Origin: Pristiophorus japonicus
Taxonomy: Eukaryota
Assembly: GCF_044704955.1 (NCBI RefSeq)
Contig: NC_092008.1
Coordinates: 2,294,001-2,358,000 of the forward strand
Reading direction: 5' to 3'
DNA: 64,000 nucleotides
Position 1 is the stretch's first letter, and the number at the start of each line of letters is the position of its first letter. Under the pieces are notes generated by a model. That model did no database searches and was not told where the DNA came from. It worked only from the letters and a program-made list of their open reading frames with translations. Shown here one piece after another: positions 789-46,458 of this stretch. The position numbers were made by a program, and so were the translations under genes.

Positions 789-902
789 GGTTGATGGCGC
801 AGTGATACACGATCGTGGTCACCACAGCAGCGCTCAGTCCCAGTATCCCCAGCACAGCTCCGATGGTGATCAAAGTTTCATTCTCAGCATTCCTGTTCCG
901 AT
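789..902 (-). CDS. WB: WB connecting peptide/transmembrane exon
   Basis: ctctcttcag| acceptor, 114 nt, C|gtaagc donor; DRNRNAENETLITIGAVLGILGLSAAVVTTIVYHCAIN. Confidence 0.87.
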
Positions 903-3900
903 CTGAAGAGAGCACAGTTACTGGGCCAGCTGTTCACCGCAAGAACAGTATCGCTGAAGTTCCCCGCTGATGGGAACCCGAACCGGGTGGTGTCCGAGAA
1001 TAGGATCAGTAGGCCATTCGGCCCCTCGAGCCTGCACCGCCATTCAATGTATAACTGGAGCAAGACTTCCCTGCTTTTATACTCCATCCCCTTTGCAACA
1101 AAGGCCAAGATCCCATTGGCCTTCCTGATCACTTGCTGTACCTGCATACTATCCTTTTGTGTTTCATGCACAAGTAACTCCCAGGTCCCGCTGTACTGCG
1201 GCACTTTGCAATCTTTCTCCATTTAAATAATAACTTGCTCTTTGATTTTTTTTCTGCCAAAGTGAACGACCTCACACTTTCCCACATTATGCTCCATCTG
1301 CCAAATTTTTGCCCACTCACTGAACCTGTCTGTGTCCTTGTGCAGATTTTTTGTGACCTCCTCACACATTGCTTTTCCTCCCATCTTTGTATCATCAGCA
1401 AACTTGTCTACGTTACACTCAGTCCCTTCTTCCAAGTCGTTAATATAGATTGTAAATAGTTGGGGGCCCAGCACTGATCCCTGCCGCACCCCACTAGTTA
1501 CTGGTTGCCAACCAGAGAATGACCCATTTATCCCGACTCTCTGTTTTCTGTTCGTTAGCCAATCCTCTATCTATGCTAATATATTACCCTCAACCCCGTG
1601 AACTTTTATCTTGTGCAGTAACCTTTTATGTGGCACCTTGTCAAATGACTTCTGGAAGTCCAAATACACCACATCCACTGGTTCCCCTTTATCCATCCTG
1701 TTTGTTACATCCTCTGTGATGATTACTTCTTCAATAAGGAGGGAGAAAGTGTAATGGAGCTCCACCTAGTGGACTTCTGATGTAATAACTACTAGTGATG
1801 CAGTGACAATAACAGGTCATGTGTCAAGGTCATGTGATACAGTTCTGCTCGCGGCCATTTCCAGCGTGTGTTGTGTGTTTGGGGTGTTAGGGATATCACG
1901 GTTGGGTCTTACGGCGATCTCTGTGTCTGAGCTTCCCCGAGTTGCTGAACTTACCGAATTGCACCACGAGTTTGCCGTTGATGGCCACATGTTCCACTTG
2001 ACAGGAGGTCGAACGGTGAACACCTCCGGCCAAGGGCAGGACACTCCAGGCCTGAAAGGTCCCATCCCTTTGAGGTACCACCCGAGTCCTGGCTGCTCCC
2101 TGGACAGCCCCTCGCCCGTCTCTGACCCAGCTCAGGTCAATCTCACGGGGAAAGAAGTTCGTCGCCAAGCACACCAAATAATCCTGCCCGCCTTCTGTCC
2201 GAACAAAGGTGTTGATGGACGTGGGAGCTGTGAAAACAGACAGCAGGTTATACCGTGGGCCGTGTAGAGGGAGCTTTAATCTGTATCTAACCCCCTGTAC
2301 CTGTCCTGGGAGTGTTTGATGGGACAGTGTAGAGGGAGCTTTACTCTGTATCTAACCCGTGTTGTATCCGCCCTGGAAGTGTTTGATGTGACAGTGTAGA
2401 GGGAACTTTACTCTGTATCGAATCCCCTGTACCTGTCCTAGGAGTGTTTGATGGGACAGTGCAGAGAGAGCTTTACTTTGTATCTAACCCCCTGTACCTG
2501 CCCTGGGAGTGTTTGATGGGACAGTGTAGAGGGAGCTTTACTCTATCTAAACCCCTGTACCTGCCCTGGGAGTGTTTGATGGGACAGTGTAGAGGGAGCT
2601 TTACTCTGTATCTAACCCCCTGTACCTGCCCTGGGAGTGTTTGATGGGACAGTGGAGAGGGAGATTTACTCTGTATCTAACCTCGTGCTGTACCTGCCCT
2701 GGGAACGTTTCATGGGAGAGTGTAAGGGGAGCTTTTCTCTGTATCTAACCCCGTTCTGTACCTGCACTGGGAGTGTTTGATGGGACAGTGTAGAGGGAGC
2801 TTTACTCTGTATCTAACCCCCTGTACCTGCCCTGGGAGTGTTTGATGGGACAGTGTAGAGGGAGCTTTACTCTGCATCTAACCCCCTGTACCTGCCCTGG
2901 GAGTGCTTGATGGAACAGTGCAGAGGGAGCTTTACTCTATCTAACCCCCTGTACCTGCCCTGGGAGTGTTTGATGGGACAGTGTAGAGGGAGCTTTACTC
3001 TGTATCTAACCCCCTGTACCTGCCCTGGGAATGTTTGATGGGACAGTGGAGAGGGAGATTTACTCTGTATCTAACCTCGTGCTGTACCTGCCCTGGGAAC
3101 GTTTCATGGGAGAGTGTAAGGGGAGCTTTTCTCTGTAACTAACCCCGTTCTGTACCTGCACTGTGAGTGTTTGATGGGACAGTGTAGAGGGAGCTTTACT
3201 CTGCATCTAACCCCCTGTACCTGCCCTGGGAGTGCTTGATGGAACAGTGCAGAGGGAGCTTTACTCTATCTAACCCCCTGTACCTGCCCTGGGAGTGTTT
3301 GATGGGACAATGTAGTGGGAGCTTTACTCTGTTTCTAAATCCCTGTACCTGCCCTGGAAGTGCTTGATGGGACAGTGTAGAGGGATCTTTACTCTGTATC
3401 TAACCCCGTGCTGTACCTGCCCTGGGAGTGTTTGATGGGACAGTGTAGAGGGAGCTTTACTCTGTATCTAACCCCGTGTACCTGCCCTGGGAGTGTTTGA
3501 TGGGACAGTGTAGAGGGAGCTTTACTCTGTATCTAACCCCCTGTACCTGCCCTGGGAGTGTTTGATGGGACAGTGTAGAGGGAGCTTTACTCTGTATCTA
3601 ACCCCCCTGTACCTGCCCTGGGAGTGTTTGATGGGGACAGTGTAGAGGGAGCTTTACTCTGTATCTAACCCCCTGTACCTGCCCTGGGAATGTTTGATGG
3701 GACAGTGGAGAGGGAGATTTACTCTGTATCTAACCTCGTGCTGTACCTGCCCTGGGAACGTTTCATGGGAGAGTGTAAGGGGAGCTTTTCTCTGTAACTA
3801 ACCCCGTTCTGTACCTGCACTGGGAGTGTTTGATGGGACAGTGTAGAGGGAGCTTTACTCTGCATCTAACCCCCTGTACCTGCCCTGGGAGTGCTTGATG

Positions 3901-6900
3901 GAACAGTGCAGAGGGAGCTTTACTCTATCTAACCCCCTGTACCTGCCCTGGGAGTGTTTGATGGGACAATGTAGTGGGAGCTTTACTCTGTTTCTAAATC
4001 CCTGTACCTGCCCTGGAAGTGCTTGATGGGACAGTGTAGAGGGATCTTTACTCTGTATCTAACCCCGTGCTGTACCTGCCCTGGGAGTGTTTGATGGGAC
4101 AGTGTAGAGGGAGCTTTACTCTGCATCTAACCCCCTGTACCTGCCCTGGGAGTGCTTGATGGAACAGTGCAGAGGGAGCTTTACTCTATCTAACCCCCTG
4201 TACCTGCCCTGGGAGTGTTTGATGGGACAATGTAGTGGGAGCTTTACTCTGTTTCTAAATCCCTGTACCTGCCCTGGAAGTGCTTGATGGGACAGTGTAG
4301 AGGGATCTTTACTCTGTATCTAACCCCGTGCTGTACCTGCCCTGGGAGTGCTTGATGGGACAGTGTAGAGGGAGCTTTACTCTGTATCTAACCCCCTGTA
4401 CCTGCCCTGGGAGTGTTTGATGGGACAGTGTAGAGGGAGCTTTACTCTGTATCTAACCCCCTGTACCTGCCCTGGGAGTGTTTGATGGGACAGTGTAGAG
4501 GGAGCTTTACTCTGTATCTAACCCCCTGTATCTGCCCTGGGAGTGTTTGATGGGACAGTGCAGAGGGAGCTTTACTCTGTATCTTACCCCCTGTACCTGC
4601 CCTGGGAGTGTTTGATGGGACAGTGTAGAGGGAGCTTTACTCTGTATCTAACCCCGTGTACCTGCCCTGGGAGTGTTTGATGGGACAGTGTAGAGGGAGC
4701 TTTACTCTGTATCTAACCCCCTGTACCTGCCCTGGGAGTGTTTGATGGGACAGTGTAGAGGGAGCTTTACTCTGTATCTAATCCCGTGCTGTACCTGCCC
4801 TGGAAGTATTTGATGGGACAGTGTAGAGGAAGATTTAATCTGTATCTAACCCCGTGCTGTACCTGCCCTGGGAGTGTTTGATGGGACAGTGTAGAGGGAG
4901 CTTTACTCTGTATCTAACCCGCTGTACCTGCCCTGGGAGTGTTTGATAGGACAGTGTAGAGGGAGCTTTACTCTGTATCTAACCCCGTGCTGTACCTGCC
5001 CTGGGAGTGTTTGATGGGACAGTGTAGAGGGAGCTTTACTCTGTATCTAACCCCCTGTACCTGCCCTGGGAGTGTTTGATGGGACAGTGTAGAGGGAGCT
5101 TTACTCTGTATCTAACCCCCCTGTACCTGCCCTGGGAGTGTTTGATGGGGACAGTGTAGAGGGAGCTTTACTCTTTATCTAACCCCCTGTACCTGCCCTG
5201 GGAATGTTTGATGGGACAGTGGAGAGGGAGATTTACTCTGTATCTAACCTCGTGCTGTACCTGCCCTGGGAACGTTTCATGGGAGAGTGTAAGGGGAGCT
5301 TTTCTCTGTAACTAACCCCGTTCTGTACCTGCACTGTGAGTGTTTGATGGGACAGTGTAGAGGGAGCTTTACTCTGCATCTAACCCCCTGTACCTGCCCT
5401 GGGAGTGCTTGATGGGACAGTGTAGAGGGATCTTTACTCTGTATCTAACCCCGTGCTGTACTTGCCCTGGGAGTGTTTGATGGGACAATGTAGTGGGAGC
5501 TTTACTCTGTTTCTAAATCCCTGTACCTGCCCTGGAAGTGCTTGATGGGACAGTGTAGAGGGATCTTTACTCTGTATCTAACCCCGTGCTGTACCTGCCC
5601 TGGGAGTGCTTGATGGGACAGTGTAGAGGGAGCTTTACTCTGTATCTAACCCCCTGTACCTGCCCTGGGAGTGTTTGATGGGACAGTGTAGAGGGAGCTT
5701 TACTCTGTATCTAACCCCCTGTACCTGCCCTGGGAGTGTTTGATGGGACAGTGTAGAGGGAGCTTTACTCTGCATCTAACCCCCTGTATCTGCCCTGGGA
5801 GTGTTTGATGGGACAGTGCAGAGGGAGCTTTACTCTGTATCTTACCCCCTGTACCTGCCCTGGGAGTGTTTGATGGGACAGTGTAGAGGGAGCTTTACTC
5901 TGTATCTAACCCCGTGTACCTGCCCTGGGAGTGTTTGATGGGACAGTGTAGAGGGAGATTTACTCTGTATCTAACCCCCTGTACCTGCCCTGGGAGTGTT
6001 TGATGGGACAGTGTAGAGGGAGCTTTACTCTGTATCTAACCCCCCTGTACCTGCCCTGGGAGTGTTTGATGGGGACAGTGTCGAGGGAGCTTTACTCTGT
6101 ATCTAACCTCGTGCTGTACCTGCCCTGTGAGTGTTTGATGGGTACAGTGTAGAGGGAGCTTTACTCTGTATCTAATCCCGTGCTGTACCTGCCCTGGAAG
6201 TATTTGATGGGACAGTGTAGAGGAAGATTTAATCTGTATCTAACCCCGTGCTGTACCTGCCCTGGGAGTGTTTGATGGGACAGTGTAGAGGGAGCTTTAC
6301 TCTGTATCTAACCCGCTGTACCTGCCCTGGGAGTGTTTGATAGGACAGTGTAGAGGGAGCTTTACTCTGTATCTAACCGCGTGCTGAACCTGCCCTGGGA
6401 GTGTTTGATGGGACAGTGTAGAGGGAGCTTTACTCTGTATCTAACCCCCTGTACCTGCCCTGGGAGTGTTTGATGGGACAGTGTAGAGGGAGCTTTACTC
6501 TGTATCTAACCCCCTGTACCTGCTCTGGGAGTGTTTGATGGGACAGTGTAGAGGGAGCTTTACTCTGTATCTAATCCCGTGCTGTACCTGCCCGGACGTA
6601 TTTGATGGGACAGTGTAGAGGAAGATTTAATCTGTATCTAACTCCGTGCTGTACCTGCCCTGGGAGTGTTTGATGGGACAGTGTAGAGGAAGATTTAATC
6701 TGTATCTAACCCCGTGCTGTACCTGCCCTGGGAGTGTTTGATGGGACAGTGTAGAGGGAGCTTTACTCTGAATCTAACCCGCTGTACCTGCCCTGGGAGT
6801 GTTTGATGGGACAGTGTAGAGGGAGCTTTACTCTGAATCTAACCCGCTGTACCTGCCCTGGGAGTGTTTGATGGGACAGTGTAGAGGGAGCTTTACTCTG

Positions 6901-9900
6901 TATCTAACCCCCTGTACCTGCCCTGGGAGTGTTTGATGGGACAGTGTAGAGGGAGCTTTACTCTGTATCTAACCCCCTGTACCTGCCCTGGGAGTGTTTG
7001 ATGGGACAGTGTAGAGGGAGCTTTACTCTGTATCTAACCCCCTGTACCTGCCCTGGGAGTGTTTGATGGGACAGTGTAGAGGGAGCTTTACTCTGTATCT
7101 AACCCCCTGTACCTGCCCTGGGAGTGTTTGATGGGACAGTGTAGAGGGAGCTTTACTCTGTATCTAACCACCTGTACCTGCCCTGGGAGTGTTTGATGGG
7201 ACAGTGTAGAGGGAGCTTTACTCTGTATCTAACCCCGTGCTGTACCTGCCCTGGGAGTGTTTGATAGGACAGTGTAGAGGGAGCTTTACTCTGTATCTAA
7301 CCCCCTTGTACCTGCTCTGGGAGTGTTTGATGGGACAGTGTAGAGGGAGCTTTACTCTGTATCTAACCTCGTGCTGTACCTGCCCTGTGAGTGTTTGATG
7401 GGTACAGTGTAGAGGGAGCTTTACTCTGTATCTAATCCCGTGCTGTACCTGCCCTGGAAGTATTTGATGGGACAGTGTAGAGGAAGATTTAATCTGTATC
7501 TAACCCCGTGCTGTACCTGCCCTGGGAGTGTTTGATGGGACAGTGTAGAGGGAGCTTTACTCTGTATCTAACCCGCTGTACCTGCCCTGGGAGTGTTTGA
7601 TAGGACAGTGTAGAGGGAGCTTTACTCTGTATCTAACCGCGTGCTGAACCTGCCCTGGGAGTGTTTGATGGGACAGTGTAGAGGGAGCTTTACTCTGTAT
7701 CTAACCCCCTGTACCTGCCCTGGGAGTGTTTGATGGGACAGTGTAGAGGGAGCTTTACTCTGTATCTAACCCCCTGTACCTGCTCTGGGAGTGTTTGATG
7801 GGACAGTGTAGAGGGAGCTTTACTCTGTATCTAATCCCGTGCTGTACCTGCCCGGACGTATTTGATGGGACAGTGTAGAGGAAGATTTAATCTGTATCTA
7901 ACTCCGTGCTGTACCTGCCCTGGGAGTGTTTGATGGGACAGTGTAGAGGAAGATTTAATCTGTATCTAACCCCGTGCTGTACCTGCCCTGGGAGTGTTTG
8001 ATGGGACAGTGTAGAGGGAGCTTTACTCTGAATCTAACCCGCTGTACCTGCCCTGGGAGTGTTTGATGGGACAGTGTAGAGGGAGCTTTACTCTGAATCT
8101 AACCCGCTGTACCTGCCCTGGGAGTGTTTGATGGGACAGTGTAGAGGGAGCTTTACTCTGTATCTAACCCCCTGTACCTGCCCTGGGAGTGTTTGATGGG
8201 ACAGTGTAGAGGGAGCTTTACTCTGTATCTAACCCCCTGTACCTGCCCTGGGAGTGTTTGATGGGACAGTGTAGAGGGAGCTTTACTCTGTATCTAACCC
8301 CCTGTACCTGCCCTGGGAGTGTTTGATGGGACAGTGTAGAGGGAGCTTTACTCTGTATCTAACCCCCTGTACCTGCCCTGGGAGTGTTTGATGGGACAGT
8401 GTAGAGGGAGCTTTACTCTGTATCTAACCACCTGTACCTGCCCTGGGAGTGTTTGATGGGACAGTGTAGAGGGAGCTTTACTCTGTATCTAACCCCGTGC
8501 TGTACCTGCCCTGGGAGTGTTTGATAGGACAGTGTAGAGGGAGCTTTACTCTGTATCTAACCCCCTTGTACCTGCTCTGGGAGTGTTTGATGGGACAGTG
8601 TAGAGGGAGCTTTACTCGGTATCTAACCCCGTGCTATATCTGCCCTGGGAGTGTTTGATGGGACAGTGTAGAGGGAGCTTTACTCTGTATCTAACCCCCT
8701 GTACCTGCCCTGGGAGTGTTTGATGGGACAGTGTAGAGGGAGCTTTACTCTGTATCTAACCCCCTGTACCTGCCCTGGGAGTGTTTGATGGGACAGTGTA
8801 GAGGGAGCTTTACTCTGTATCTAACCCCCTGTACCTGCCCTGGGAGTGTTTGATGGGACAGTGTAGAGGGAGCTTTACTCTGTATCTAACCCCCATGTAC
8901 CTGCCCTGGGAGTGTTTGATGGGACAGTGTAGAGGGAGCTTTACTCTGTATCTAACCCCATGCTGTACCTGCCCTGGGAATGGCCGACTCCTGCTCCTAT
9001 TTCTGATGATCTTATTTGCTCTACATTATACAGCGGCCGTTTTGTTCGAGCACCTTACCCATGGCTTTCACAGTGATGTTGAGCAATAAAGCTGTGTGTT
9101 TAATTTTATCGCATAGACTGTCAATCTGTTGTGGGACCGAGTTGACAAAACCTTCATTGGAGTTGCGCCCATCGACCACGGCTTGTGCAAAAGATTGCTT
9201 TGCAACAAATCTTTTAGTGGCGGTGTCGTAGTGCACGATCGTTTCTCCATCATACGCATCATCCCAACCGATTGAGGAATTCCGACCACATCGCCTGCAG
9301 TCACAGTGGATGTGAAACACATGCGGGTCTAGAAAGAACGAACAATGGATCATCACGGTGCAGGAGATCGGCAAATACTTGCACACTGTCAGCCCTGACA
9401 CGGCGGGTCGTACTTCTGCCTCGGAGTCAGCAGGTCTTCGTTTCAAGTCTCACTCCAGGGACTCGAGCACAAAAATCCAGGCTGACACTCGCAGCGCAGT
9501 ACTGAGGGAGCGCCGCACTGTCGGAGGGGCAGTACTGAGGGAGTGCCCCACTGTCGGAGGGGCGGTACTGAGGGAGCCCCGCACTGTCGGAGGGGCGGTA
9601 CTGAGGGAGTGCCCCACTGTCGGAGGGGCGGTACTGAGGGAGCCCCGCACTGTCGGAGGGGCAGTACTGAGGGAGCGCCGCACTGTCGGAGGGGCAGTAC
9701 TGAGGGAGTGCCCCACTGTCGGAGGGGCGGTACTGAGGGAGCCCCGCACTGTCGGAGGGGCGGTACTGAGGGTGCGCCGCACTGTCGGAGGGGAGGTACT
9801 GAGGGAGTGCCGCACTGTCGGAGGGGCAGTACTGAGGGAGCCCCGCACTGTCGGAGGGGCGGTACTGAGGGAGTGCCGCACTGTCGGAGGGGCGGTACTG

Positions 9901-11942: not shown

Positions 11943-12319
11943 CTCGAAAGGCGGCCGAAGGATTGGCGAGCCGTCTGGGCTGTCGGTGTGTCTCGTCCAA
12001 GCGAGGAATGGTTCTGAATCGCTCAGGTACGGACGCTCGGCTTACCAACCCGACTCCTCCCACACACAGCCGTCGGCTGGGAAACTCCCCCAGCACTCAC
12101 ATCGCCCAACCTCGCCAACACCAGACAAGGCTTCTTTCATCAATTCATTCACTTCCTCTTCCTCGTGTCTTTATCACGACACCGCCCATTAAACCAACTC
12201 AACCCTCGAGCTTCGAAACTCTGCTGCTAATTGCACCTTGACAGATAATTCATTCTCTACCTCTTGCCCAAAACATCCATTAAAGGGATGGTGTCATCAT
12301 TAAAGGGGAGTGTTCACGG

Positions 12320-14045
12320 CTGAGGTCTCATATTTGACCCTGAAATGAGCTTCCGGCCTCATCTCCGTGGCAGAGCAAAACCGGCCTCTTTCCCCCTCCG
12401 TAACATCGCCCGTCGCCTCCCCTCGCTCAGCTCATCCGCTGCTGAAGCCCTCATCCGTGCCTCTGCCCCCCCCCTCTCCAGACTTGACTATTCCAACACA
12501 CTCCTGGCCAGCCTCCCACATTCTACCCGACGCAAACTCGAGGTGATCCAAAACTCGGCTGCCCCCCCCCCGCCGTGTCCTAACTCACACCCAGTCCCAC
12601 TCACCCATCACCCCCTGTGCTCACTGACCCCGTGTCCTAACTCGCACCGAGTCCCACTCACCCATCACCCCCTGTGCTCACTGACCCCGTGTCCTAACTC
12701 GCACCGAGTCCCACTCACCCATCACCCCCTGTGCTCACTGACCCCGTGTCCTAACTCACACCCAGACCCACTCACCCATCACCCCCTGTGCTCACTGACC
12801 CCGTGTCCTAACTCACACCCAGTCCCACTCACCCATCACCCCCTGTACTCACTGACCCCGTGTCCCAACTCACACCCAGTCCCGCTCACCCATCACCCCC
12901 TGTGCTCACTGACCCCGTGTCCTAACTCACACCCAGTCCCGCTCACCCATCACCCCCTGTGCTCACTGACCCCGTGTCCTAACTCACACCCAGTCCCACT
13001 CACCCATCACCCCCTGTGCTCACTGCCCCGTGTCCTAACTCACACCGAGTCCCACTCACCCATCACCCCCTGTGCTCACTGCCCCGTGTCCTAACTCGCA
13101 CCGAGTCCCGCTCACCCATCACCCCCTGTGCTCACTGCCCCGTGTCCTAACTCGCACCGAGTCCCGCTCACCCATCACCCACTGTGCTCACTGACCGACA
13201 TTGGCTCCCGGTCCGGCAACGCCTCAATTTCAAAATTCACATCCTTATTTACAAATCTCTCCTCGCCCCCTCCCTATCTCTGTAACCCCCTCCAGCCCCT
13301 ATACCCCTCCCTATCTCTGTAACCTCCTCAAGCCCCTACACTCCTCCCGATCTCTGTAACCTCCCCTAGCCACTACATCCCTCCCTATCTCTGTAACCCC
13401 CTCCAGCCCCTACACCCCTCCCTATATCTGTAACCCCCTCCAGCCCCTACACCCCTCCCTAGCTCTGTAACCTCCTCCAGCCCCTACACCCCTCCCTATC
13501 TCTGTAACCTCCTCCAGCCCCACAACACCTCCCTATCTCTGTAACCCCCTCCAGCCCCTACACCCCTCCCTATCTCTGTAACCTCCTCCAGCTCCTACAC
13601 CCATCCCTATCTCTATAACCCCCTCCAGCCCCTACACCCCTCCCTATCTCTGTAACCCCCTCCAGCCCCGACACCCCTCCCTATCTCTGTAACCCCCTCC
13701 AGCCCCTACACCCCTCCCTATCTCTGTAACCTCCTCCAGCCCCTACACCCCTCCCTATCTCTGTAACCCCCTCCAGCCCCACAACCCCCCCGAGATCTCT
13801 GCGCTCCACTAATTCTGCCCCCCTGACCATCCCTGATTATAATCGCTCCACCAGCGGTGGCCGTGCCTTCTGTTGCCTGGGCCCCAAGCTCTGGAACTCC
13901 CTCCCTAAACCTCTCCGCCTCGCTCTCCTCCTTCAAGACGCTACCTTTTTATGTGGCTCGGTGTCAAATATGGTCTGATAATCGCTCCTGTGAAGCACCT
14001 TGGGACATTTCACTACGTTAAAGGCGCTATATAAATTCAGGTTGT
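12320..14045 (+). mobile_element. L2-clade LINE 3' fragment with internal 57-bp and ~38-bp tandem expansions
   Basis: RLDYSNTLLASLP...LEVIQNSAA motif, arrays 12573-13195 and 13270-13790, tail ggcgctatataaat. Confidence 0.78.
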
Positions 14046-14086
14046 TGCTGCTGTTGATGAGGTGCGGTATGTGTCGAATCTGGGCC

Positions 14087-15030
14087 GCGGTACTGAGGGA
14101 GTGCCGCACTGTCGGAGGGGCAGTACTGAGGGAGCCCCGCACTGTCGGAGGGGCAGTACTGAGGGAGCCCCGCACTGTGGGAGGGGCGGTACTGAGGGAG
14201 CGCCGCACTGCGCTGTCGGAGGGGCGGTACTGAGGGAGCACCGCACTGTCGGAGGGGCGGTACTGAGAGAGCCCCGCACTGTCGGAGGGGCGGTACTGAG
14301 GGAGCACCGCTCTGTCGGAGGGGCGGTACTGAGGGAGCGCCGCACTGTCGGAGGGGCGGTACTGAGGGAGCCCCGCACTGTCGGAGGGGCGGTACTGAGG
14401 GAGCGCCGCACTGTCGGAGGGGCGGTACTGAGGGAGCACCGCACTGTCGGAGGGGCGGTACTGAGGGAGCCCCGCACTGTCGGAGGGGCGGTACTGAGGG
14501 AGTGCCGCACTGTCGGAGGGGCGGTACTGAGGGAGCGCCGCACTGTCGGAGGGACGGTACTGAGGGAGCGCCGCACTGTCGGAGGGGCGGTACTGAGGGA
14601 GCGCCGCACTGTCGGAGGGGCGGTACTGAGGGAGCCCCGCACTGTCGGAGGGACGGTACTGAGGGAGCACCGCACTGTCGGAGGGGCAGTACTGAGGGAA
14701 CGCTGCACTGTCGGAGGGGCCATATTTCGGGATGAGACGTTAAACCGAGGCCCCGTCTGCCCTCTCGGGTGGATGTAAAATCTCCCGGGGCAACTATTGG
14801 AAGAAGAGCAGGGGGAGCTCTCCCCCGTGTCCTGGGGCCAATATTTATCCCACGAGCAACAGACGATCCGGGTCACTATCACGTCTCTGTGTGTGTGGGA
14901 GCTTGCTGTGCGCAAATTGGCGTTTCCCACATTGCAACAGTGAGCGCGCTCCTTCATTAGTTGTGAGGCGCTTTGAGAGGTCCGGTGGTCGTGATAGGCG
15001 CTATATAAATACAAGTCTTGCTTTCTTCTT
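14087..15030 (+). mobile_element. 33-bp array + Deu-domain SINE 3' half (SacSINE1-like)
   Basis: Array runs into tcggatgagacgttaaaccgaggccccgtctgcc and ends ggcgctatataaatacaagtctt. Confidence 0.8.
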
Positions 15031-15139
15031 CCTGGCCTATGGATTGCTCACCCTGTAACCTGAACCGTTGTGACACTACGCCCCTCCGGGAGCTGTAACA
15101 AACTCCCCAGTGTGGTTACACTCAGCTCATTCCTCATCA

Positions 15140-15347
15140 ACTGGATTCCTGCACTGATCCGGTGCCAAGTGTCGGATGAGTTAGGATCTCTGTGCCAAAA
15201 AAACCTGCAGCCAATGAGACGCGCGGAGGGCGAGACTGAATTCCTTCACTGGGAAGGGAGGCTTGAAAGCTCATCGGCCGAGGTGCTGGGGCAGAGCGGT
15301 GATTGGGACGGGCTCTGCGTGCACTCTCTGAACGTTCCTGCAGCAGC
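15140..15347. promoter_or_regulatory. Putative bidirectional promoter with two oppositely oriented CCAAT/Y-box elements
   Basis: CCAAT at 15211-15215 (CTCATTGG on -) and TGATTGG at 15300-15306 on +, in a short unique island between repeats just upstream of the WA ATG. Confidence 0.5.
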
Positions 15348-15432
15348 ATGACCTCGTTGGCCAACGTGGGAGCGCGTGTCTTCCTACTCATCGCGCTGTC
15401 TCTGACCACGGCAACACGGGCAACAGATCTCG
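15348..15432 (+). CDS. WA: WA exon 1, signal peptide [28 protein letters not shown]
   Basis: ATG in gcagcATG context, hydrophobic core, phase-1 donor G|gtgagt. Confidence 0.85.
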
Positions 15433-18400: not shown

Positions 18401-21400
18401 ACAACCCACAAGTCAGGAGTGTGATGGAACACTCCCCACTTGCCTGGATGAGTTGCAGCTCCAACAACACTCGAGACGCTCGACACCATCCGGGACAAAG
18501 CAGCCCCGCTCGATGGGCCACGCGACCCACCGCCTCCAACACTCACTCCCTCCACCACCTCCAACACTCACTCCCTCCACCACCGGCGCACCGTGGCTGC
18601 AGTGTGCACCGTCCACAAGATGCACCGCGGCAACTGGCCAAGGCTTCTTCGGCAACACCTCCCGAACCCGCGACCTCTACCCGCCTAGAAGGTCAAGGGC
18701 AGCAGGTCCATGGGAACACCACCCCCTCCACGTTCCCCTCCCAGTCACACACACACCATCCCTCGACTTGGAAATATATCGGCCGTTCCTCCATCGTCGC
18801 TGGGTCCCAATCCTGGACCTCCCTCCCTAACAGCACTGTGGGAGCACCTTCACCACACGGGACTGCAGCGGTTCAAGAAGGCGGCTCACCCCCACCTTCT
18901 CAAGGGACGGGCAATAAAACAGTCATTGTTCTTTGAAGTAATTCCTTGTCACATGCACACGACCCAAGTGCCAGGCAATGACCATCCCCAACAAGCGAGA
19001 TTCTAACTACCTCCCCGTTGACGTTCACCGGAGAGACACGAGAGTGTGTCCCTCAAGTACAAATGTCTAACTTTCTCTGCTATCTTCCCCTTCCTAGACT
19101 GTGAATCAATGGCGGAACAAATCTATTACACTTACACGCAGGGTGCGGAGAGAATCCTCGACATCTTCAGCGTCAATGCCACCCCCTTCCTGATCTACGA
19201 TTTCGGAGCGCGAACCTTTGTCATCAACGAGAAAGAGACGGACGGCAAGGAGGAGCTGGGTCCGGAAGAAGTGAGCTTTTATAGTGACAGGGCTCAAAGT
19301 TTGCAAGCTCGCCTACGCGGCATCACCAAGGAAATGATAACGCTGACAAACGGCACAAGCATCCCCAGCAGTAAGTCGCGGGTGTTTGTTCTGTTCACTG
19401 TCATTCTTAGAACTCGGAACTCATGTTGGGAGAGGACAACATTTTAGGCTTAACCCAGTGTCCGTTTTATTACGCAACAAAAAAAACCGACGGAAAAAAC
19501 TACAGGACTAGACTTCTGAGAGAAATTGACTGAAGACATACAATCGCCATTCCTGGCTGTAGCTATTGTAAGAACATAAGAATTAGGAACAGGAGTAGGC
19601 CATCTAGCCCCTCGGGCCTGCTCCGCCATTCAACAAGATCATGGCTGATCTGGCCGTGGACTCAGCTCCACTTACCCGCCCGCTCCCCGTAACCCTTAAT
19701 TCCCTTATTGGTTAAAAATCTATCTATCTGTGACTTGAATACATTCAATGAGCTAGCCTCAACTGCTTCCTTGGGCAGAGAATTCCACAGATTCACAACC
19801 CTCTGGGAGAAGAAATTCCTTCTCAACTCGGTTTTAAATTGGCTCCCCCGTATTTTGAGGCTGTGCCCCCTAGTTCTAGTCTCCCCGACCAGTGGAAACA
19901 ACCTCTCTGCCTCTATCCTGTCTATCCCTTTCATTATTTTAAATGTTTCTATAAGATCGCCCCTCATCCTTCTGAACTCCAACGAGTAAAGACCCAGTCT
20001 ACTCAATCTATCATCATAAGGTAACCCCCTCATCTCCGGAATCAGCCGAGTGAATCGTCTCTGTACCCCCTCCAAAGCCAGTATATCCTTCCTTAAGTAA
20101 GGTGACCAAAACTGCACGCAGTACTCCAGGTGCGGCCTCACCAATACCCTGTACAGTTGCAGCAGGACCTCCCTGCTTTTGTACTCCATCCCTCTCGCAA
20201 TGAAGGCCAACATCCCATTCACCTTCCCGATTACCTGCTGCACCTGCAAACTAACTTTTTGGGATTCACGCACAAGGACCCCCAGGTCCCTCTGCACCTC
20301 AGCATGTTGTAATTTCTCCCCATTCAAATAGTATTCCCTTTTACTGTTTTTTATCCCCCAAGGTGGATGACCTCACACTTTCCGACATTGTATTCCATCT
20401 GCCAAACCTTAGCCCACTCGCTTAGCCATTGTAGGTTCGTGGTCGTTGGTTCCGTGACCGGTTGGTGGTCCTTCTGCCCGTTCTCCGCAGCTGTTCTCGT
20501 TCCTGTCTTCCCGTCTCTCCATTTGTCGTTCTCCACCTTCTTGTGTTCCTGTGTTCCTATATTTATATCCACAGTATGAATAAGTTCCCCGCTGGGCCGG
20601 GGTCCGATTAATGCGCCTGGATCGAGGTGGTGATTTGTTTGACCTCGCTGTAGTGGTGAGTTTTGATTGGCTGCTAATTTGCACACGGCGTCGGCAGGGC
20701 AAGAGATAACTCCTTATCCTTAATGCCCCGTTATCCAAAAATGTGCATTTCGTAGGGTCCTTTGTAGTCCTGGTTCCTTGCAGACTTGTAGTCTCTGGGG
20801 TGAACTGTTTTACCCCCTGCGGCCAATCAATCCCGGGGCACCGCGGATAAATAGTATCAGTCTCTTTGTCTGTATCCATAACCCAAATTTAGTCCTTGCC
20901 GACTGAGGTTGCTTTTAATAGGTGATGAGTCACCACTTGCCTCAGGCTGGTGCCGTTTCCTCTCCCAGGTAGTCCAAAAAGGTAGTTAAAACAGTTTGTC
21001 CGTGGCCTCTTCCTGTGCCTTGTTCCAAGAAAAATAGGTGTACCCTTACACTCCCTCCTTTTAATGTCTCTTGTACGCATTCTGAGTACTGACATCACTG
21101 CGGTTTGGTGGGTCGGGCCGGGAGTGGAGATCTGGGTTGAAGTCCGGTCCTGCTAGGCGATGTTACGGAGGTGGAAATAGGCGGTCTTAGTTACCCTGCG
21201 GAATTATGGTTGAAAGCTCGTTGCAGGTTCAAACCCATACCACACAGCACTGCCCCCCCCCAGTCCACAAGATCCACGGCGTGGCCCTGGACAACGTGAA
21301 CCACTTTCCGTACCTTGGGAGCCTCTTATCAACAAGAGGTCCAACATTGCCTCCAGTGCAGCCTTCGGCCGCCTGAGGAAAAGTGTGTTCGAAGACCAGG

Positions 21401-24400
21401 CCCTCAAAACTGCCGCCCAGCTCATGGTCTACAGGGCTGTAGTGATACCCGCCCTCCTGTATGGCTCAGAGACATGGACCATGTACAGTAGACACCTCAA
21501 GTCGCTGGAGAAGTACCACCGACGCTGTCTCCGCAAGATCCTGCAAATCCCCCGGGAGGACAGACGCACCAACGTTAGCGTCCTCGACCAGGCCCAACAT
21601 CCCTAGCATCGAAGCACTGACCACACTCGACCAGCTCCGCTGGGCAGGGCCACATTGTCCGCATGTCCCCCCGACACGAGACTCCCAAAGCCAAGCACTC
21701 TACTCGGAACTCCTTCACGGGCAAACGAGCCAAAGGTGGGCAGAGGAAACGTTACAGGGGACCACCCTCAAAGCCCTCCCTGATAAAGTGCAACATCCCC
21801 ACCGGCACCTTGGAGTCCCTGGGCCCAAAGACCAGTCCCGCCCTAAGTGGAGGGAGTGCATCCGGGAGGGCGCTGAGCTCTTCGAGTCTCGTCGCCGAGA
21901 GTGGGCAAATGCATGGCAGATGCAGTATAATGTGGATAAATGTGAGATTATCCACTTTGGGGGCAAAAACAGGAAGGCAGAATATTATCTGAATGGTGAC
22001 AGATTAAGAAAAGGGGAGGTGCAACGAGACCTGGGTGTCATGGTACATCAGTCATTGAAAGTTGGCATGCAGGTACAGCAGGCGGTGAAGAAGGCAAATG
22101 GTATGTTGGCCTTCATAGCGAGGGGATTTGAGTATAGGAGCAGGGAGGTCTTACTGCAGTTGTACAGGGCCTTGGTGAGGCCTCACCTGGAATATTGTGT
22201 TCAGTTTTGGTCTCCTAATCTGAGGAAGGACATTCTTGCTATTGAGGGAGTGCAGCGAAGGTTCACCAGACTGATTCCCGGGATGACAGGACTGACATAT
22301 GAGGAGAGACTGGATCGACTGGGCTTATATTCACTGGGGTTTAGAAGGATGAGAGGGGATCTCATAGAAACATATAAAATTCTGACGGGACTGGACAGGT
22401 TAGATGCAGGAAGAATGTTCCCGATGTTGGGGAAGTCCAGAACCAGGGGTCACAGTCTAAGGATAAGGGGTAAGCCATTTAGGACCGAGATGAGGAGAAA
22501 CTTCTTCACTCAGAGAGTGGTGAACCTGTGAAATTCTCTACCACAGAGAGTTGTTGAGGCCAGTTCGTTAGATATATTCAAAAGGGAGTTAGATGTGGCC
22601 CTTAGGGCTAAAGGGATCAAGGGGTATGGAGAGAAAGCAGGAATGGGATACTGAGGGAATGATCAGCCATGATCTTATTGGATGGTGGTGCAGGCTCAAA
22701 GGGCTGAATGGCCTACTCCTGCACCTATTTTCTTTGTTTCTGTTTCCTCGATTTTGAGCGACTACCTATGATGATATGAGAGGGCACACGGGGCCTCAGT
22801 TTAACGTCTCATCCGAAAGCCGGCATCTCCGACAGTGCGGTGCTCCCTCAGTACCGCCCCTCCGACAGTGCAGCGCTCCCTCAGTACCGTCCCTCCGACA
22901 GTGCGGCACTCCCTCAGTACCGCCCCTCCGACAGTGCGGCGCTCCCTCAGTACCTCCCGTCCGACAGCGCAGTACGGCACTCCCTCAGTACTGTCCCTCC
23001 GACACTGTGGCACTCCCTCAGTACTGCCCCTCCGACACTGTGGCACTCCCTCAGTACTGCCCCTCCGACACTGTGGCACTCCCTCAGTACCGCCCCTCCG
23101 ACACTGTGGCACTCCCTCAGTGCCGCCCCTCCGACACTGTGGCACTCCCTCAGTGCCGCCCCTCCGACACTGTGGCACTCCCTCAGTACTGCCCCTCCGA
23201 CAGCGCAGTGCAAATGCACTTCTCTCCCCGCGCTCCCCCAGTTCCTGTTCTGGTTCCTGGGGCCCCCCCTCCGACAACAAGGGAACCTTTGGAGACCGGT
23301 AACGCTATCATTTCCGTTGCAGAGAAGCCAGAAGCCGAAATCTACACGGAGAAAGACTACGCACCGGGCCGGCCAAACATTCTGTATTGTTACGCCGAGA
23401 AATTCTACCCATACAAGATTGAAATGAAGTTCCTGGTCAATGGAAGTGAATTTGCCGGGCAGGTCCATTCACTCCCGGTCCTGGTGGAGGATGATTGGAC
23501 CTTCAATGTCTTCGCCTACATCCGGATTGAGCCACAGGACGGGGACACTTACAGTTGCCAGATTGATCACCGCAGCCTCGACAAACCGCTGACAGTTGTG
23601 CTGGGTAGGTCAAGTAGGGATACACGGGCAATGGTGGATGGGTAAAGGTCAGCTGGTCCATCCAGGATGTCCCACACAATTGTGTATCACTCAGTACTGC
23701 CCCTCCGACAGTGCGGCGCTCCCTCAGTACTGCCCCTCCGACAGTGCGGCGCTCCCTCAGTACTGCCCCTCTGACAGTGCAGCGCTCCCTCAGTACCGCC
23801 CCTCCGACAGTGCGGCACTCCCTCAGTACCGCCCCTCCGACAGTGCGGCGCTCCCTCAGTATCACCCCTCCGACAGTGCGGCGCTCCCTCAGTACTGCCC
23901 CTCCGACAGTGCGGCGCTCCCTCAGTACTGCCCCTCCGACAGTGCGGCGCTCCCTCAGTACTGCCCCTCCGACAGTGCGGCGCTCCCTCAGTACTGCCCC
24001 TCCGACAGTGCGGCGCTCCCTCAGTACTGCCCCTCCGACAGTGCGGCGCTCCCTCAGTACCGCCCCTCCGACAGTGCGGCGCTCCCTCAGTACCGCCCCT
24101 CCGACAGTGCGGCGCTCCCTCAGTACCGCCCCTCCGACAGTGCGGTGCTCTCTCAGTACCGCCCCTCCGACAGTGCGGCGCTCCCTCAGTACCGCCCCTC
24201 CGACAGTGCAGCGCTCCCTCAGTACCGCCCCTCCGACAGTGCGGCACTCCCTCAGTACCGCCCCTCCGACAGTGCGGCGCTCCCTCAGTACCGCCCCTCC
24301 GACAGTGCGGCACTCCCTCAGTACTGCCCCTCCGACAGTGCGGTGCTCCCTCAGTACCGCCCCTCCGACAGTGCGGCGCTCCCTCAGTACTGCCCCTCCG

Positions 24401-27311
24401 ACAGTGCGGCGCTCCCTCAGTACTGCCCCTCCGACAGTACGGCGCTCCCTCAGTACTGCCCCTCCGACAGTGCGGCGCTCCCTCAGTACTGCCCCTCCGA
24501 CAGTACAGCGCTCCCTCAGTACTGCCCCTCAGACAGTGTGGCGCTCCCTCAGTACTGCCCCTCCGACAGCTCAGTGCGGTGCTCCCTCAGTACTGCACTG
24601 GGAGTGTCAGCCTGGTTTTATGTGCTCGAGTCTCTGGAGTGGGACTCGAACCCACAACCTTCTGGCTCTGAGGCGAGGGTGCTGCCCACTGAGCCACGAC
24701 TGACACAACCGCTGGGCAAGGAGAGGGGCAGCCTGAGGTATCTCCACGGTTGAATATCCTTCCAGCTTTCCTCCATACGCCAGCTCGTTGGAGCTCTTCG
24801 GCGATCGTTGTGCGCTCCAGGTGCGCTGAAACCCTTTCGCAGTGCAGTCACTGCCCTTAGAGACACAAACATGAAGAACAGCCATTGGTGGTGAGCTAAT
24901 GGGTCACTGAGTACCTGATCGAGAAACAGGGGCAGGAGTCGGCCATTCGGCCACTCGAGCCTGCACCACCATTCAATATGATCATGGCTGATCATTCCCT
25001 CAGTACCCCATTCCTGCTTTCTCTCCATACCCCTTGATCCCTTTAGCCGTAAGGGCCACATCTAACTCCCTTTTGAATATATCTAACGAACTGGCCTCAA
25101 CAACTCTCTGTGGTAGAGAATTCCACAGGTTCACCACTCTCTGGGTGAAGAAGTTTCTCCTCATCTCGGTCCTAAATGGCTTACCCCTTATCCTTAGACT
25201 GTGACCCCTGGTTCTGGACTTCCCCAACATCGGGAACATTCTTCCTGCATCTAACCTGTCCAGTCCCGTCAGAATTTTATATGTTTCTATGAGATCCCCT
25301 CTCATTCTTCTAAACTCCAGTGAATATAAGCCCAGTCGATCCAGTCTTTCTTCATATATCAGTCCTGCCATCCCGGGAATCAGTCTGGTGAACCTTCGCT
25401 GCACTCCCTCAATAGCAAGAACGTCCTTCCTCAGATTAGGAGACCAAAACTGAACACAATATTCCAGGTGTGGTCTCACCAAGACCCTGTACAACTGCAG
25501 TAAGACCTCCCTGCTCCTATACTCAAATCCCCTCGCTATGAAGGCCAACATACCATTTGCCTTCTTCACCGCCTGCTGTACCTGCATGCCAACCTTCAAT
25601 GACTGATGTACCATGACACCCAGGTCTCGTTGCACCTCCCCTTTTCCTAATCTGTCACCATTCAGATAATATTCTGCCTTCTTGTTTTTGCCCCCAAAGT
25701 GGATAACCTCACATTTATCCACATTATACTGCATCTGCCATGTATTTGCCCACTCACCTAACCTGTCCAAGTCACCCTGCAGCCTCTTAGCATCCTCCTC
25801 ACAGCTCACACCGCCACCCAGCTTAGTGTCATCTGCAAACTTGGAGATATTACATTCAATTCCTTCATCTAAATCATTAATGTATATTGTAAATAGCTGG
25901 GGTCCCAGCACTGAACCTTGTGGTACCCCACTAGTCAAATGGGCCGCCCCTTATTCTGAGACTGTGCCCCCTAGTTCTAGATTCCCCCACGAGGGGGAAA
26001 CATCCTCTCTGCATCCACCCTGTCCAGCCCCCCTCAGAATCTGATACGTTTCGATAAGATCACCTCTCATTCTCCTAAACTCCAATGAGTACAGGCCCAA
26101 CCTGCTCAACCTTTCCTCATAAGAATTTGTCGATTTTTACACAGGTCAGTCGGCAAGAAATCGGAGCAGGATGCCGGACTCTGGGACCATTGTTTGCACT
26201 GTGGGAGTTATCCTGGGAGCTCTGGGCTTGGCGATTACCCTGTTCCTGATCGCTAAAATATGCAAACGGTGAGATCCACGCAGCCTTATCCTTTTCTGTT
26301 TCTGCACCGTGTAATACTGAGCTACCCCCTCGTTGACCACTGCTCCACCCAGTGGTCCAGAGTGGTATCATCATCGGCAGTCCCTCGGAATCGAGGGAGA
26401 CTTGCTTCCATTCTGAAAGTGAGTTCTTCGGTGGCTGAACAGTCCAATACAGGAATTACAGACCCTGTCACAGGTGGGACAGATAGTGGTTCGAGGAATC
26501 TGCCATCCAGCTCATGGTCGACAGGGCTGTAGTGATACCCGCCCTTCTGTATGGCTCAGAGACATGGATCATGTAAAGTAGACACCTCAAGTCAATGGAG
26601 AAATACCACCAACGCTGTCTCCGCAAAATCCTGCAAATCCCCCGGGAGGACAGACGCACCAACGTTAGCGTCCTCGACCAGGCCCAACATCCCCAGCATC
26701 GAAGCACTGACCACACTCGACCAGCTCCGCTGGGCAGGGCCACATTGTCCGCATGTCCCCCCAGACACGAGACTCCCAAAGCCAAGCGCTCTACTCGGAA
26801 CTCCTTCACGGGCAAACGAGCCAAAGGTGGGCAGAGGAAACGTTACAGGGACCACCCTCAAAGCCTCCCTGATAAAGTGCAACATCCCCCACCGACACCT
26901 GGGAGTCCCTGGGCCCAAAGACCAGTCCGCCCTAAGTGGAGGGAGTGCATCCGGGAGGCCGCTGAGCGCCTCGAGTCTCGTCGCCGAGAGCGTGCAGAAA
27001 CCAAGCGCAGGCAGCGGAAGGAGCGTGCGGCAAACCAGTCCCACCCTCCCCTTCCCTCAACCACTGTCTGTCCCACCCTGTGACAGGGACTGTGGCTCCC
27101 GTATTGGACTGTTCAGCCACGTGAGGCCTCATGTTAAGAGTGGAAGCAAGTCTTCCTCGATCCCAAGGGACTGCCGATGATGATGAGTGAAGGTGTGGGT
27201 AGGGAGACTCAACGTTCGGGCGTTTCGAAGGCGACGGGCAGCGACTGATACCTCCGTTAATTCCCTTCCAGGCCGGCTAAGCTTTGCGCTGGACGGGTCG
27301 GCAAGCAGTGA
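15348..27311 (+). CDS. WA: MHC W-category alpha chain gene (WA-like), 5 coding exons: 15348-15432, 19098-19370, 23323-23604, 26145-26268, 27272-27311; ~267 aa
   Basis: Exons join in frame with GT-AG introns (phases 1,1,1,2): leader, alpha1, C1-set Ig alpha2, CP/TM, cytoplasmic tail. alpha2 has beta2m-like [11 protein letters not shown] (no C-strand Trp) and DDWTF. TM has the class II alpha CxxGxxxGxxG motif. Confidence 0.88.
15665..17092 (+). repeat. 43-bp satellite derived from the CR1 3' end (also 10677-10935 on - and 28430-29105 on +)
   Basis: Unit gtaacaggctcgaggggctgaacggcctcctcctgtccctaat resembles the CR1 tail gcaggctcgaggggccgaatggccgactcctgctcct. Confidence 0.9.
17690..18918 (+). 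mobile_element. HER1-like CR1-clade LINE fragment
   Basis: [15 protein letters not shown]; 3' end gggcaataaa shared with the HE1-like SINE. Confidence 0.78.
19098..19370 (+). CDS. WA: WA exon 2, alpha1 (membrane-distal) domain
   Basis: Acceptor ttcccc-ttcctag|, 273 nt, donor A|gtaagt. [18 protein letters not shown] aligns by eye to class I alpha1 RFIAVGYVDDTQFVRFDS; C-terminal NGT sequon lies at the usual MHC position. Confidence 0.85.
19570..20427 (-). mobile_element. CR1 LINE 3' fragment
   Basis: 221-aa ORF2 C-terminus 19662-20327. Confidence 0.92.
20430..21098 (-). mobile_element. LTR-element remnant (PPT + 3' LTR) in WA intron 2
   Basis: On -, polypurine AAAAGGAGGGAG (21062-21051) directly followed by TGTAAGG at 21050; TATAAA ~20565; no polyA signal seen. 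Confidence 0.55.
21230..22775 (+). mobile_element. RTE fragment (21230-21900) followed by a CR1 3' fragment (21900-22745)
   Basis: LLYGSETW...[13 protein letters not shown], then [11 protein letters not shown]...LVRPHLEYC. Confidence 0.88.
22778..23210 (-). repeat. 33-bp array + start of the Deu domain
   Basis: Reverse complement of the 14087-14770 arrangement. Confidence 0.8.
23323..23604 (+). CDS. WA: WA exon 3, alpha2 C1-set Ig domain (beta2-microglobulin-like)
   Basis: ttgcag| acceptor, 282 nt, G|gtaggt donor; KPEAEIY...PNILYC...FYP...DDWTF...[10 protein letters not shown]. Confidence 0.93.
23690..24707 (-). mobile_element. SINE tRNA-like head (A/B boxes) + 33-bp array
   Basis: On -, TGGCTCAGTGG (A box) and GGTTCGAGTCC (B box), then the tandem 33-mers. 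Confidence 0.85.
24925..26123 (-). mobile_element. CR1 LINE fragments (two subfamilies)
   Basis: 312-aa RT C-terminal ORF 25000-25938; second piece 25937-26123. Confidence 0.92.
26145..26268 (+). CDS. WA: WA exon 4, connecting peptide + transmembrane
   Basis: ttttacacag| acceptor; [42 protein letters not shown]; class II alpha-type TM glycine motif. Confidence 0.88.
26510..27186 (+). mobile_element. RTE LINE 3' fragment in WA intron 4
   Basis: [12 protein letters not shown], zinc finger, gatgatgatga tail. Confidence 0.85.
27272..27311 (+). CDS. WA: WA exon 5, cytoplasmic tail (R)[12 protein letters not shown]
   Basis: Strong acceptor ttcccttccag|, phase 2 matches the exon 4 donor CG|gtgaga, in-frame TGA; candidate AATAAA at 28273-28278. 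Confidence 0.6.
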
Positions 27312-27607: not shown

Positions 27608-27995
27608 ATGGGAGTGTTTGACGGGACAGTGTAGAGGGAGCTTTACTCTGTATCTAACCCCCTGTACCTGCCCTGGGAGTGTTTGATGGGACAGTGTAGA
27701 GGGAGCTTTACTCTGTATCTAACCCCCTGTACCTGTCCTGGGAGTGTTTGATGGGGACAGTGTAGAGGGAGTTTTACTCTGTATCTAACCCCCTGTACCT
27801 GTCCTGGGAGTGTTTGATGGGACAGTGTAGAGGGAGCTTTACTCTGTATCTAACCCCGTGCTGTACCTGTCCTGGGAGTGTTTGATGGGACAGTGTAGAG
27901 GGAGCTTTACTCTGTATCTAACCCCGTGCTGTACCTGCCCTGGGAGTGTTTGATGGGACAGTGTAGAGGGAGCTTTACTCTGTATCTAACCCCGG
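27608..27995. repeat. Same 65-bp satellite, ~6 units, in the probable WA 3' UTR
   Basis: Same unit sequence as 2263-8980. Confidence 0.93.
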
Positions 27996-30450: not shown

Positions 30451-30769
30451 AACAGGAGCTGCATTCAGTAAATAGGTCACATTACGAAATGTTTTTCCCC
30501 ACAGCTTAAGACGACAGGACCACTTTGGCTGGAATTATGATTGCGGTAGTTCCTCGTACCTGTGGAAATCCCCTTCGTCACGTTAGTGAGACTGACTCTC
30601 TGTGTAAAATAATTGGGTTTTAACACCTCGGGGGAATAGCGATACATCGTTTGTGTCTCTCACATACCTGAAGCCTCATTGCAAGAGAGGCAGAGGGTGT
30701 GATCGGGACTGTGAATCCCCTCGTCTGTTCATGGCGGGGATAATCCCCCTGCTCTTCTTCGAAATAGTG

Positions 30770-31656: not shown

Positions 31657-31659
31657 TCT

Positions 31660-46220: not shown

Positions 46221-46458
46221 GAAAACAGCCATCTTCTCGCTGAAGAACTGTACCTGCTCTTATTTTGTGTTCACTCATTGTGTATTTTGGACTTAAAAGT
46301 ATCTATAGTTACCCAAAAGTCCAGGGACGAATGTCAGAACTCATTTGTATGCCAGTTTTGGCCTTTATTATTTGGGTTACGGTTACTATCGTGCTTGCGT
46401 GTTGTTATTGTAACGAATTAAGTTCAAGAGTGTTATAGAAGTAAACAGAAAAGGGAAG

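Follow-up and report, generated by a model that had tools for sequence, protein, structure and literature searches.

The locus considered here, two divergently transcribed genes of the major histocompatibility complex (MHC) type in the Japanese sawshark Pristiophorus japonicus, poses two questions: to which MHC lineage does the pair belong, and is it intact? The analyzed DNA (the window) comprised 64,000 nucleotides of contig NC_092008.1 (NCBI RefSeq assembly GCF_044704955.1, positions 2,294,001 to 2,358,000 of the forward strand), and all coordinates below are counted from its first letter. A preliminary description, based on the letters of the window, had placed the genes between 789 and 27311 and had assigned them to the W-category of MHC genes. 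We consider it probable (roughly 0.88) that the locus represents a WA_DS5-like/WB_Nds5L pair of this category, whose α (WA) and β (WB) chains are transcribed away from a shared region of 3.4 kb. This type of pair has been on record for other sharks since 2021; the sawshark locus is a new species' copy and not a new kind of gene.

The category assignment is carried by a small set of residues. According to Okamura et al. 2021 (PMC8713811), W-category molecules combine a class II architecture with class I-type residues between the domains. In WA, the marks are located in the α2 domain and comprise W61, an F or L at position 37 replacing the core Trp of the immunoglobulin (Ig) fold, and Y8. In WB, they comprise P57 and the lack of a Trp at position 61 (mostly Gly) in β2, together with A32, G35 and D37 in β1. 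The same study reports that class II β2 domains invariably carry a Trp at the GDW position and that class II α2 domains invariably retain the Ig core Trp. The sawshark α2 domain displayed a Trp (W178, within DDWTF) that aligned with W60 of β2-microglobulin (β2m; KDWSF) and corresponds to the name-giving Trp of the category at Ig position 61. F156 (KFLVNG) was found at the Ig core Trp position 37 and aligned with L39/40 of β2m (DLLKNG), and Y127 (EIYTEK) aligned with Y10 of β2m (QVYSRH). The loop preceding W178 is two residues longer than that of β2m; HMMER aligned an L of this loop with L54 and a V with F56. Ungapped counting instead yielded V55 and V57, compared to L55 and V57 in other shark WA_DS5-like proteins and to the WA mark of L55 and F or Y at 57. 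In the β chain, β2 contained V-P-Q-R-D-G-T-F-Q, with a Pro at 57 and G, not Trp, at 61, while β1 contained A-Y-D-G-E-T, with A32 and G35 present and a T at position 37. The two Trp residues that are invariant in conventional class II are replaced by G (β2) and F (α2).

These observations agree with the preliminary description, which had based the W-category on the α-chain Trp in a β2m-like Ig domain, the likeness of IEMKFLVNG to IEVDLLKNG of β2m, the Y10-like Tyr and the P..DG and AYDG motifs of the β chain. All eight motifs quoted there were recovered by six-frame translation, once each and in the gene and orientation claimed. DDWTF (23490-23504), IEMKFLVNG (23418-23444) and the α transmembrane (TM) motif (26195-26227) were located on the plus strand, and AYDG (9246-9257), PQRDGTFQ (2052-2075) and the β TM motif (838-861) on the minus strand. 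The class II-type glycine spacing of the TM segments was present in both chains.

Two spliced genes with leader, distal-domain, C1-set and TM exons were found at the places described, with GT-AG introns and fitting phases. Exon boundaries of both genes were determined by reading the DNA around each of them, followed by a check by script; for the two leaders, the preliminary description had listed no coordinates. The α gene occupies the plus strand. A database search with the stop-free frame of its α2 exon retrieved the 267-aa Pristiophorus japonicus protein P0001 (100% identity, E 2.9e-57), and all residues of P0001 could be placed on five exons of the window at 100% identity by tblastn. Exon 1 (15348..15432) comprises 28 codons, from the ATG through the signal peptide, and one further base (phase 1; residues 1-28 of P0001 at 100%) and is followed by a gtgagt donor. 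Exon 2 (19098..19370; acceptor ag, donor gtaagt) encodes the membrane-distal α1 domain (residues 29-119) and yielded no Pfam match; its identity to α1 of further shark WA chains was 37-63%. Y127, F156 and W178 are all located in exon 3 (23323..23604), which encodes α2, the β2m-like C1-set Ig domain (Pfam C1-set, E 1.4e-16). Exon 4 (26145..26268), with a phase 2 end, encodes the connecting peptide and a TM segment with GxxxGxxG spacing; it is 100% identical to residues 214-255. Exon 5 (27272..27311; acceptor ag at 27270-27271) contributes a short cytoplasmic tail (100% identity to residues 255-267) and the tga stop codon at 27309-27311. The exon phases are 1, 1, 1 and 2, and all introns are GT-AG. 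Since the five exons reproduce P0001 at 100%, the α gene is complete and already modelled. The automatic database name of P0001 is only "class II DP alpha-1 chain-like".

For the α chain, the database protein stood for the joined exons; the exons of the β gene, on the minus strand, were searched separately. Four of them were found, all with GT-AG introns and with domain exons in phase 1, as is usual for MHC genes. Exon 2 (9059..9328) encodes the membrane-distal β1 domain with AYDG; its Pfam matches to MHC_II_beta and MHC_I were weak and below the cut-off. Exon 3 (1955..2227) encodes β2, a C1-set Ig domain (Pfam C1-set, E 2.8e-14) in which P..DG replaces the GDW of class II. Exon 4 (789..902) encodes the connecting peptide and a TM segment with GxxxGxxG spacing and is followed by a phase 1 donor (gt at 788-787). 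The limits of the pair given in the preliminary description thus have an exact meaning: the β connecting peptide/TM exon ends at 789, and the α stop codon ends at 27311. The leader exon, which would comprise 24 codons for the signal peptide, ATG included, and one further base (phase 1), is placed by inference at 11942-11870. It was one of two candidates within 9329-15600 that combine an ATG, a hydrophobic stretch and a phase 1 GT, and the chosen candidate has a gtaagt donor. Its product can be aligned with the Heptranchias WB leaders of P0180 and P0181 (RWT..VA..VV.V.GW; RWTFVAVVAAVVCVVDGW).

The 3′ end of the β gene is located outside the window. In shark WB relatives, the TM exon is followed by coding sequence for about 50 more cytoplasmic residues, which end in a conserved ..LTK.. 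motif, and tblastn with 18 WB proteins gave no credible match to such exons in bases 1-788. Therefore, the last WB exons lie beyond the left edge of the window, and intactness is observed for four exons only. An alternative gene end, a stop at 757 reached by reading on past the TM exon, was contradicted by a transcript contig that leaves the genome at about 787-789. In the relatives P0043 and P0174-P0186 (WB_Nds5L), the tail is long and rich in Ser, Thr and Cys, with a conserved ..TAKF.. and a C-terminal ..S-A-D-D/G-L-T-K.. motif. The catshark model P0046 joins β2 directly to the last exon and represents a form without a TM region. When the 8000 database candidates with most words in common were scored with a shark WB profile, no WB protein of the sawshark emerged, which weakly suggests that the gene is unannotated. 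A word-index search with the β2 frame gave no match among proteins of up to 264 aa; WB relatives measure 293-303 aa, so absence from the database is not implied.

Transcription of the β gene was observed in public sequencing data. Two runs, both from one study, contain parts of the segment 700-2300. A contig of 592 bases (depth 30) from run X1 aligned, in a comparison with bases 1-2400, to 787-903 and 1957-2142, skipping 1053 bases. This gap corresponds to the predicted β2-TM junction (exon ends at 1955 and 902, intron of 1052 bases), and the shift by one base is accounted for by a C common to both sides and a G>A difference at 1956. The contig differed from the window at two positions only, 1956 (TTC>TTT) and 1989 (CAT>CAC). 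Both differences are synonymous in WB β2 (F and H codons) and presumably allelic. The remaining 287 bases of the contig were found nowhere in 1-786. As the contig leaves the genome at this point with 287 bases unplaced, the donor at 789 is used and the downstream exons are located off the window. The second run contributed a contig on 793-904. The kind of run is not on record, but non-repeat intron bins with zero depth and small contig sets are as expected for RNA. Thus, the β gene is transcribed and spliced at the β2-TM junction.

These data bear on the possibility that the genes form a W-category pair of which one or both members are decaying or non-functional within an expanded, repeat-invaded cluster. 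Such decay would be in line with introns that are saturated with satellites and long interspersed nuclear element (LINE) fragments and with the presence of at least four WA_DS5-like proteins in the sawshark, one of which (P0004) has an aberrant leader, lacks a TM segment and looks broken or mis-modelled. Furthermore, no WB model was found for the locus, and the 3′ end of the β gene is unseen. However, none of the nine exons contains a stop or frameshift, all splice sites are canonical, the α open reading frame is complete, and the conserved cysteines, the Ig Trp and the glycosylation sites are retained. The β transcript, moreover, is correctly spliced and differs by synonymous changes only. 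We therefore regard decay as unlikely. The preliminary description had called the pair intact and probably functional; for the α gene this reading is supported by the full open reading frame, which equals the database model, and for the β gene by four exons without defects and a spliced contig, the gene not being complete in the window.

The arrangement of the two genes agrees with a W-category pair. The start codons at 15348 (plus strand) and 11942 (minus strand) are oriented head to head, 3406 bp apart. In cloudy catshark, WA_DS5-like/WB_Nds5L pairs are likewise arranged head to head, with start codons 4185 and 3059 bp apart (Okamura et al. 2021, PMC8713811). About half of the 3.4-kb region shared by the sawshark genes (11943..15347) consists of minisatellite arrays (12573-13196, 13267-13791 and 14087-14720). 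CCAAT/ATTGG motifs are present within 140 bp of each ATG, and the region is a putative promoter for both genes. By eye, no class II S-X-Y promoter module was seen upstream of either start codon (no X box, only CCAAT/ATTGG).

Next to the diagnostic residues, the relatives of both chains define the type of pair. The supplement of PMC8713811 distinguishes three shark pair types, namely, WA_Nds3L/WB_DS3L, WA_DS10L/WB_DS1L and WA_DS5L/WB_Nds5L. The sawshark α2 and α TM stretches match, by eye, the WA_DS5 rows of its Datasets S2 and S3, not the DS10 or Nds3L rows, and the β TM exon matches the WB_Nds5L rows of Dataset S3. The α2 domain was 56-66% identical to the WA-type chains of six further sharks and rays, and the α2-exon search also returned three sawshark paralogues (P0002-P0004). 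For the β2 exon, multi-domain Ig proteins ranked highest by summed score in the search of representatives. Among single-domain proteins, those of skates, sawfish and sharks (218-298 aa, 49-56% identity) matched best; lungfish and teleost proteins followed (35-41%), and all carry a P..DGTFQ-type motif. One of them, lungfish P0149 (37% over β2), falls into the same 90% cluster as the Protopterus entry BBO93987.1, whose deposited name is "class II beta chain, WB_01 precursor", and this anchors the β2 matches to the named WB family. Besides WB-type proteins, the matches read from this search comprised class I, tapasin-like and Ig proteins, with neither β2m nor a recognizable class II chain among them. 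With a profile built from the shark matches, some 20 additional WB-type proteins of sharks were obtained (293-303 aa). When 18 shark WB proteins were compared to the window by tblastn, identities amounted to 37-55% for β1, 50-55% for β2 and up to 72% for the TM exon, the latter value being reached with the Heterodontus proteins P0176 and P0177. P0176 is the bullhead shark WB_Nds5L row of PMC8713811. P0179 corresponds to the great white shark WB_Nds5L TM row, and its identities to the sawshark exons were 48%, 50% and 54%. The published WB_Nds5L rows carry T or S at β1 position 37 and H at position 6, so T37 and H6 of the sawshark are typical of this lineage. The idea that T37/H6 signals a new divergent lineage was ruled out, as both residues are common to these rows (PMC8713811).

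RefSeq names of WB_Nds5L-type proteins (P0031, P0039, P0043, P0177, P0187 and others) were found to be inconsistent and included class I alpha, MR1-like, class II DQ beta, zinc-alpha-2-glycoprotein-like and HFE homolog. Evidently, the W-category is unknown to the pipelines that assign these names.

The relationship to solved structures was assessed by phmmer searches against PDB chains. The α2 domain scored 66 bits with class II β2 (HLA-DP beta) and 62 bits with β2m, and no class II α chain was among the top 60. The best matches of β2 were Ig constant domains and class I α3; the top 60 included one class II α chain (DO alpha). These scores agree with the W pattern, although they are not a tree. 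An ordinary class II α/β pair, either classical or non-classical of the DM/DO type, is suggested by automatic names such as "DP alpha-1 chain-like" and would fit the exon layout, the head-to-head orientation, the TM glycine spacing and the HLA-DP beta score of α2, which is as high as that with β2m, but it is very improbable, given that G (β2) and F (α2) occupy the invariant Trp positions (PMC8713811), that the interface Trp is located on the α chain, that the 60 best PDB matches of β2 are dominated by class I α3 and contain no class II β chain, that 0 of 34 matches of up to 460 aa read from the best 150 of 1.84 billion representatives were recognizable class II, and that the automatic names of WB relatives span class I, class II, MR1, HFE and zinc-alpha-2-glycoprotein and are therefore weightless.

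The two chains should form a heterodimer, which the preliminary description had proposed to model. In complex predictions, the WA ectodomain (residues 29-213 of P0001) together with the product of the β1 exon scored 0.78 in three of three runs, compared to 0.01 for the best of three controls, a score that measures likeness and not binding. Of 78 solved complexes, 51 attain the mark used for this score, as do 2 of 108 mismatched pairs. Contacts agreed by at least 81% between runs, and the predicted local distance difference test value (pLDDT) of the partner was at least 84. The closest predicted contacts were between the first strand of α1 (32-39) and the first strand of β1 (4-12), as in the floor of the MHC groove. 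The predicted interface further includes W178 and L173 of α2 and residues 24-30 of β1 (AYDGETI), and this fits the proposed class I-like contact.

From these features a mechanism can be proposed. Each chain is expected to be a type I membrane glycoprotein comprising a signal peptide, a domain distal to the membrane, a C1-set Ig domain, a connecting peptide, a TM segment and a tail. By analogy with class II and with a co-expression experiment, for which salamander chains were used (PMC8713811), the two chains would pair as a class II-like membrane heterodimer. In this complex, α1 and β1 may build the MHC platform, and the β2m-like α2 domain would push W178 beneath the platform onto the AYDG segment of β1, like W60 of β2m in class I. 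Surface display would then occur only when both chains are made, and the complex would probably act as a non-classical molecule.

Several points weigh against the assignment to an intact WA_DS5-like/WB_Nds5L pair. The aforementioned V of α2 is aligned with F56 of β2m, and the D122 and Q96 of class I are replaced in β1 by T and H. The β leader rests on a weak alignment, with no RNA or database model covering it, and no WB protein of the sawshark was found in the database, so the β model consists of our own exon calls. The cytoplasmic WB exons are off the window and may therefore harbor a defect. The spliced junction was seen in a single contig of a single study whose run kind is not recorded, and the transcript evidence covers the β gene. 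Finally, the complex score may reflect the prediction model's memory of solved MHC structures. We judge the W-category pair to be the best description of the locus with these points taken into account.

The sawshark paralogues of the α chain differ from each other mainly in one domain. Compared to P0001, the proteins P0002-P0004 were 37-63% identical in α1 and 81-96% identical in α2; for P0002, the leader was 96% and the TM/tail region 100% identical. Among the closest sawshark WA pairs, leader, α2 and TM/tail were 91-100% identical. Tree paths between sawshark WA copies amounted to about 1.05 changes per site for α1 versus 0.08 on the α2 side of the comparison. The four sawshark α2 domains formed a starred clade (99/99), while the α1 domains fell into two deep groups. 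The divergence of α1 would be in keeping with diversifying selection acting on the domain that forms the groove, with gene conversion homogenizing the other exons, or with both. It is conceivable, though doubtful, that the sawshark WA_DS5-like genes constitute a ligand-diversified polygenic family and are not monomorphic non-classical genes; in that case, the ligands presented by W-category molecules would vary. The notion of trans-species α1 lineages was dropped: the sawshark α1 domains did not form a clade in the tree, but their monophyly was not rejected (approximately unbiased test, p-AU 0.385).

The introns proved to be saturated with repeats, as had been claimed. Nearly all of the 6.8-kb intron between β1 and β2 (WB intron 2) is filled by a non-coding 65-bp satellite (2262..8979; about 102 copies, 91% matches, Tandem Repeats Finder score of 10854). 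Much of the remaining intron sequence and of the intergenic region consists of arrays with units of 33, 37, 43 and 57 bp and of LINE reverse transcriptase fragments. The 65-bp unit recurs at 27609-27994, just past the WA gene. A GC-rich 33-bp minisatellite was observed in both orientations at 9499-10365, 14087-14720, 22827-23202, 23690-24596 and 30650-31690 and creates spurious long open reading frames in all frames. The 43-bp array was found at 10680-10933, 15667-17091 and 28432-29107. Outside the pair, the plus strand contains at about 41900-47400 a retrovirus-like row of open reading frames with protease-like, reverse transcriptase/RNase H/integrase (650 aa) and envelope-like (301 aa) products; this segment is an endogenous retroviral element. 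Tandem arrays with a unit of about 39-42 bp occupy 51300-54900 and 58500-59800, with several frames open on both strands (e.g., ...HIPGLDHTWSTVHSSGL...).

The W-category has been proposed to represent an intermediate step in evolution between the MHC classes II and I. The sawshark locus leaves the existing knowledge of the category unchanged and contributes a well-resolved pair from an order of squalomorph sharks, with exact exon coordinates, splicing evidence for the β chain and a shared putative control region of 3.4 kb. It also illustrates that automatic annotation, which names W genes inconsistently, may miss a gene such as the β gene of this locus.

Compared to known systems, the pair shares with classical class II (e.g., HLA-DRA/DRB) the composition of an α and a β chain, one exon per domain, domain exons in phase 1, divergent pairing and GxxxGxxG-type TM glycines. 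In contrast to classical class II, the interface Trp is located in the Ig domain of the α chain and not in β2, α2 lacks the Ig core Trp, β2 carries P..DG as does class I α3, and the residues that bind the peptide backbone were not seen in β1 (no H-N after the second Cys, by eye). With class I and β2m, the pair has in common an α2 domain that aligns end to end with β2m (62 bits) and carries the equivalents of Y10, L39/40 and W60, a β1 domain with A117-Y-D-G120 and a β2 domain with P235..D-G-T-F-Q of the class I heavy chain. It differs from class I in that the equivalents of the heavy chain are split over two genes and in that T and H replace D122 and Q96. The WA/WB genes of lungfish, salamander and teleosts share the diagnostic motifs; they occur as single pairs, whereas three pair types, and several copies, are present in sharks, and the lungfish and teleost sequences that were read lack the long Ser-rich tail with ..LTK.. 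of the WB_Nds5L lineage. The closest systems are the WA_DS5-like/WB_Nds5L pairs of great white shark, cloudy catshark and bullhead shark (PMC8713811), which are likewise arranged head to head, with 3-4 kb between the starts and class II-type exons. The first 44 residues of α2 were 64% identical to the houndshark WA_DS5 row (28 of 44, by eye). The TM rows of the published shark pairs are nearly identical to those of the sawshark, and AYDG, T37 and H6 of β1 as well as P57 and the missing Trp 61 of β2 are shared. The sawshark pair differs by a V in α2 that, counted from the Trp without gaps, replaces the L of the WA_DS5-like proteins of other sharks, by an extra Cys in β1 (RRCG), by the 6.7-kb satellite in WB intron 2 and by its origin from a new species and order, the Pristiophoriformes.

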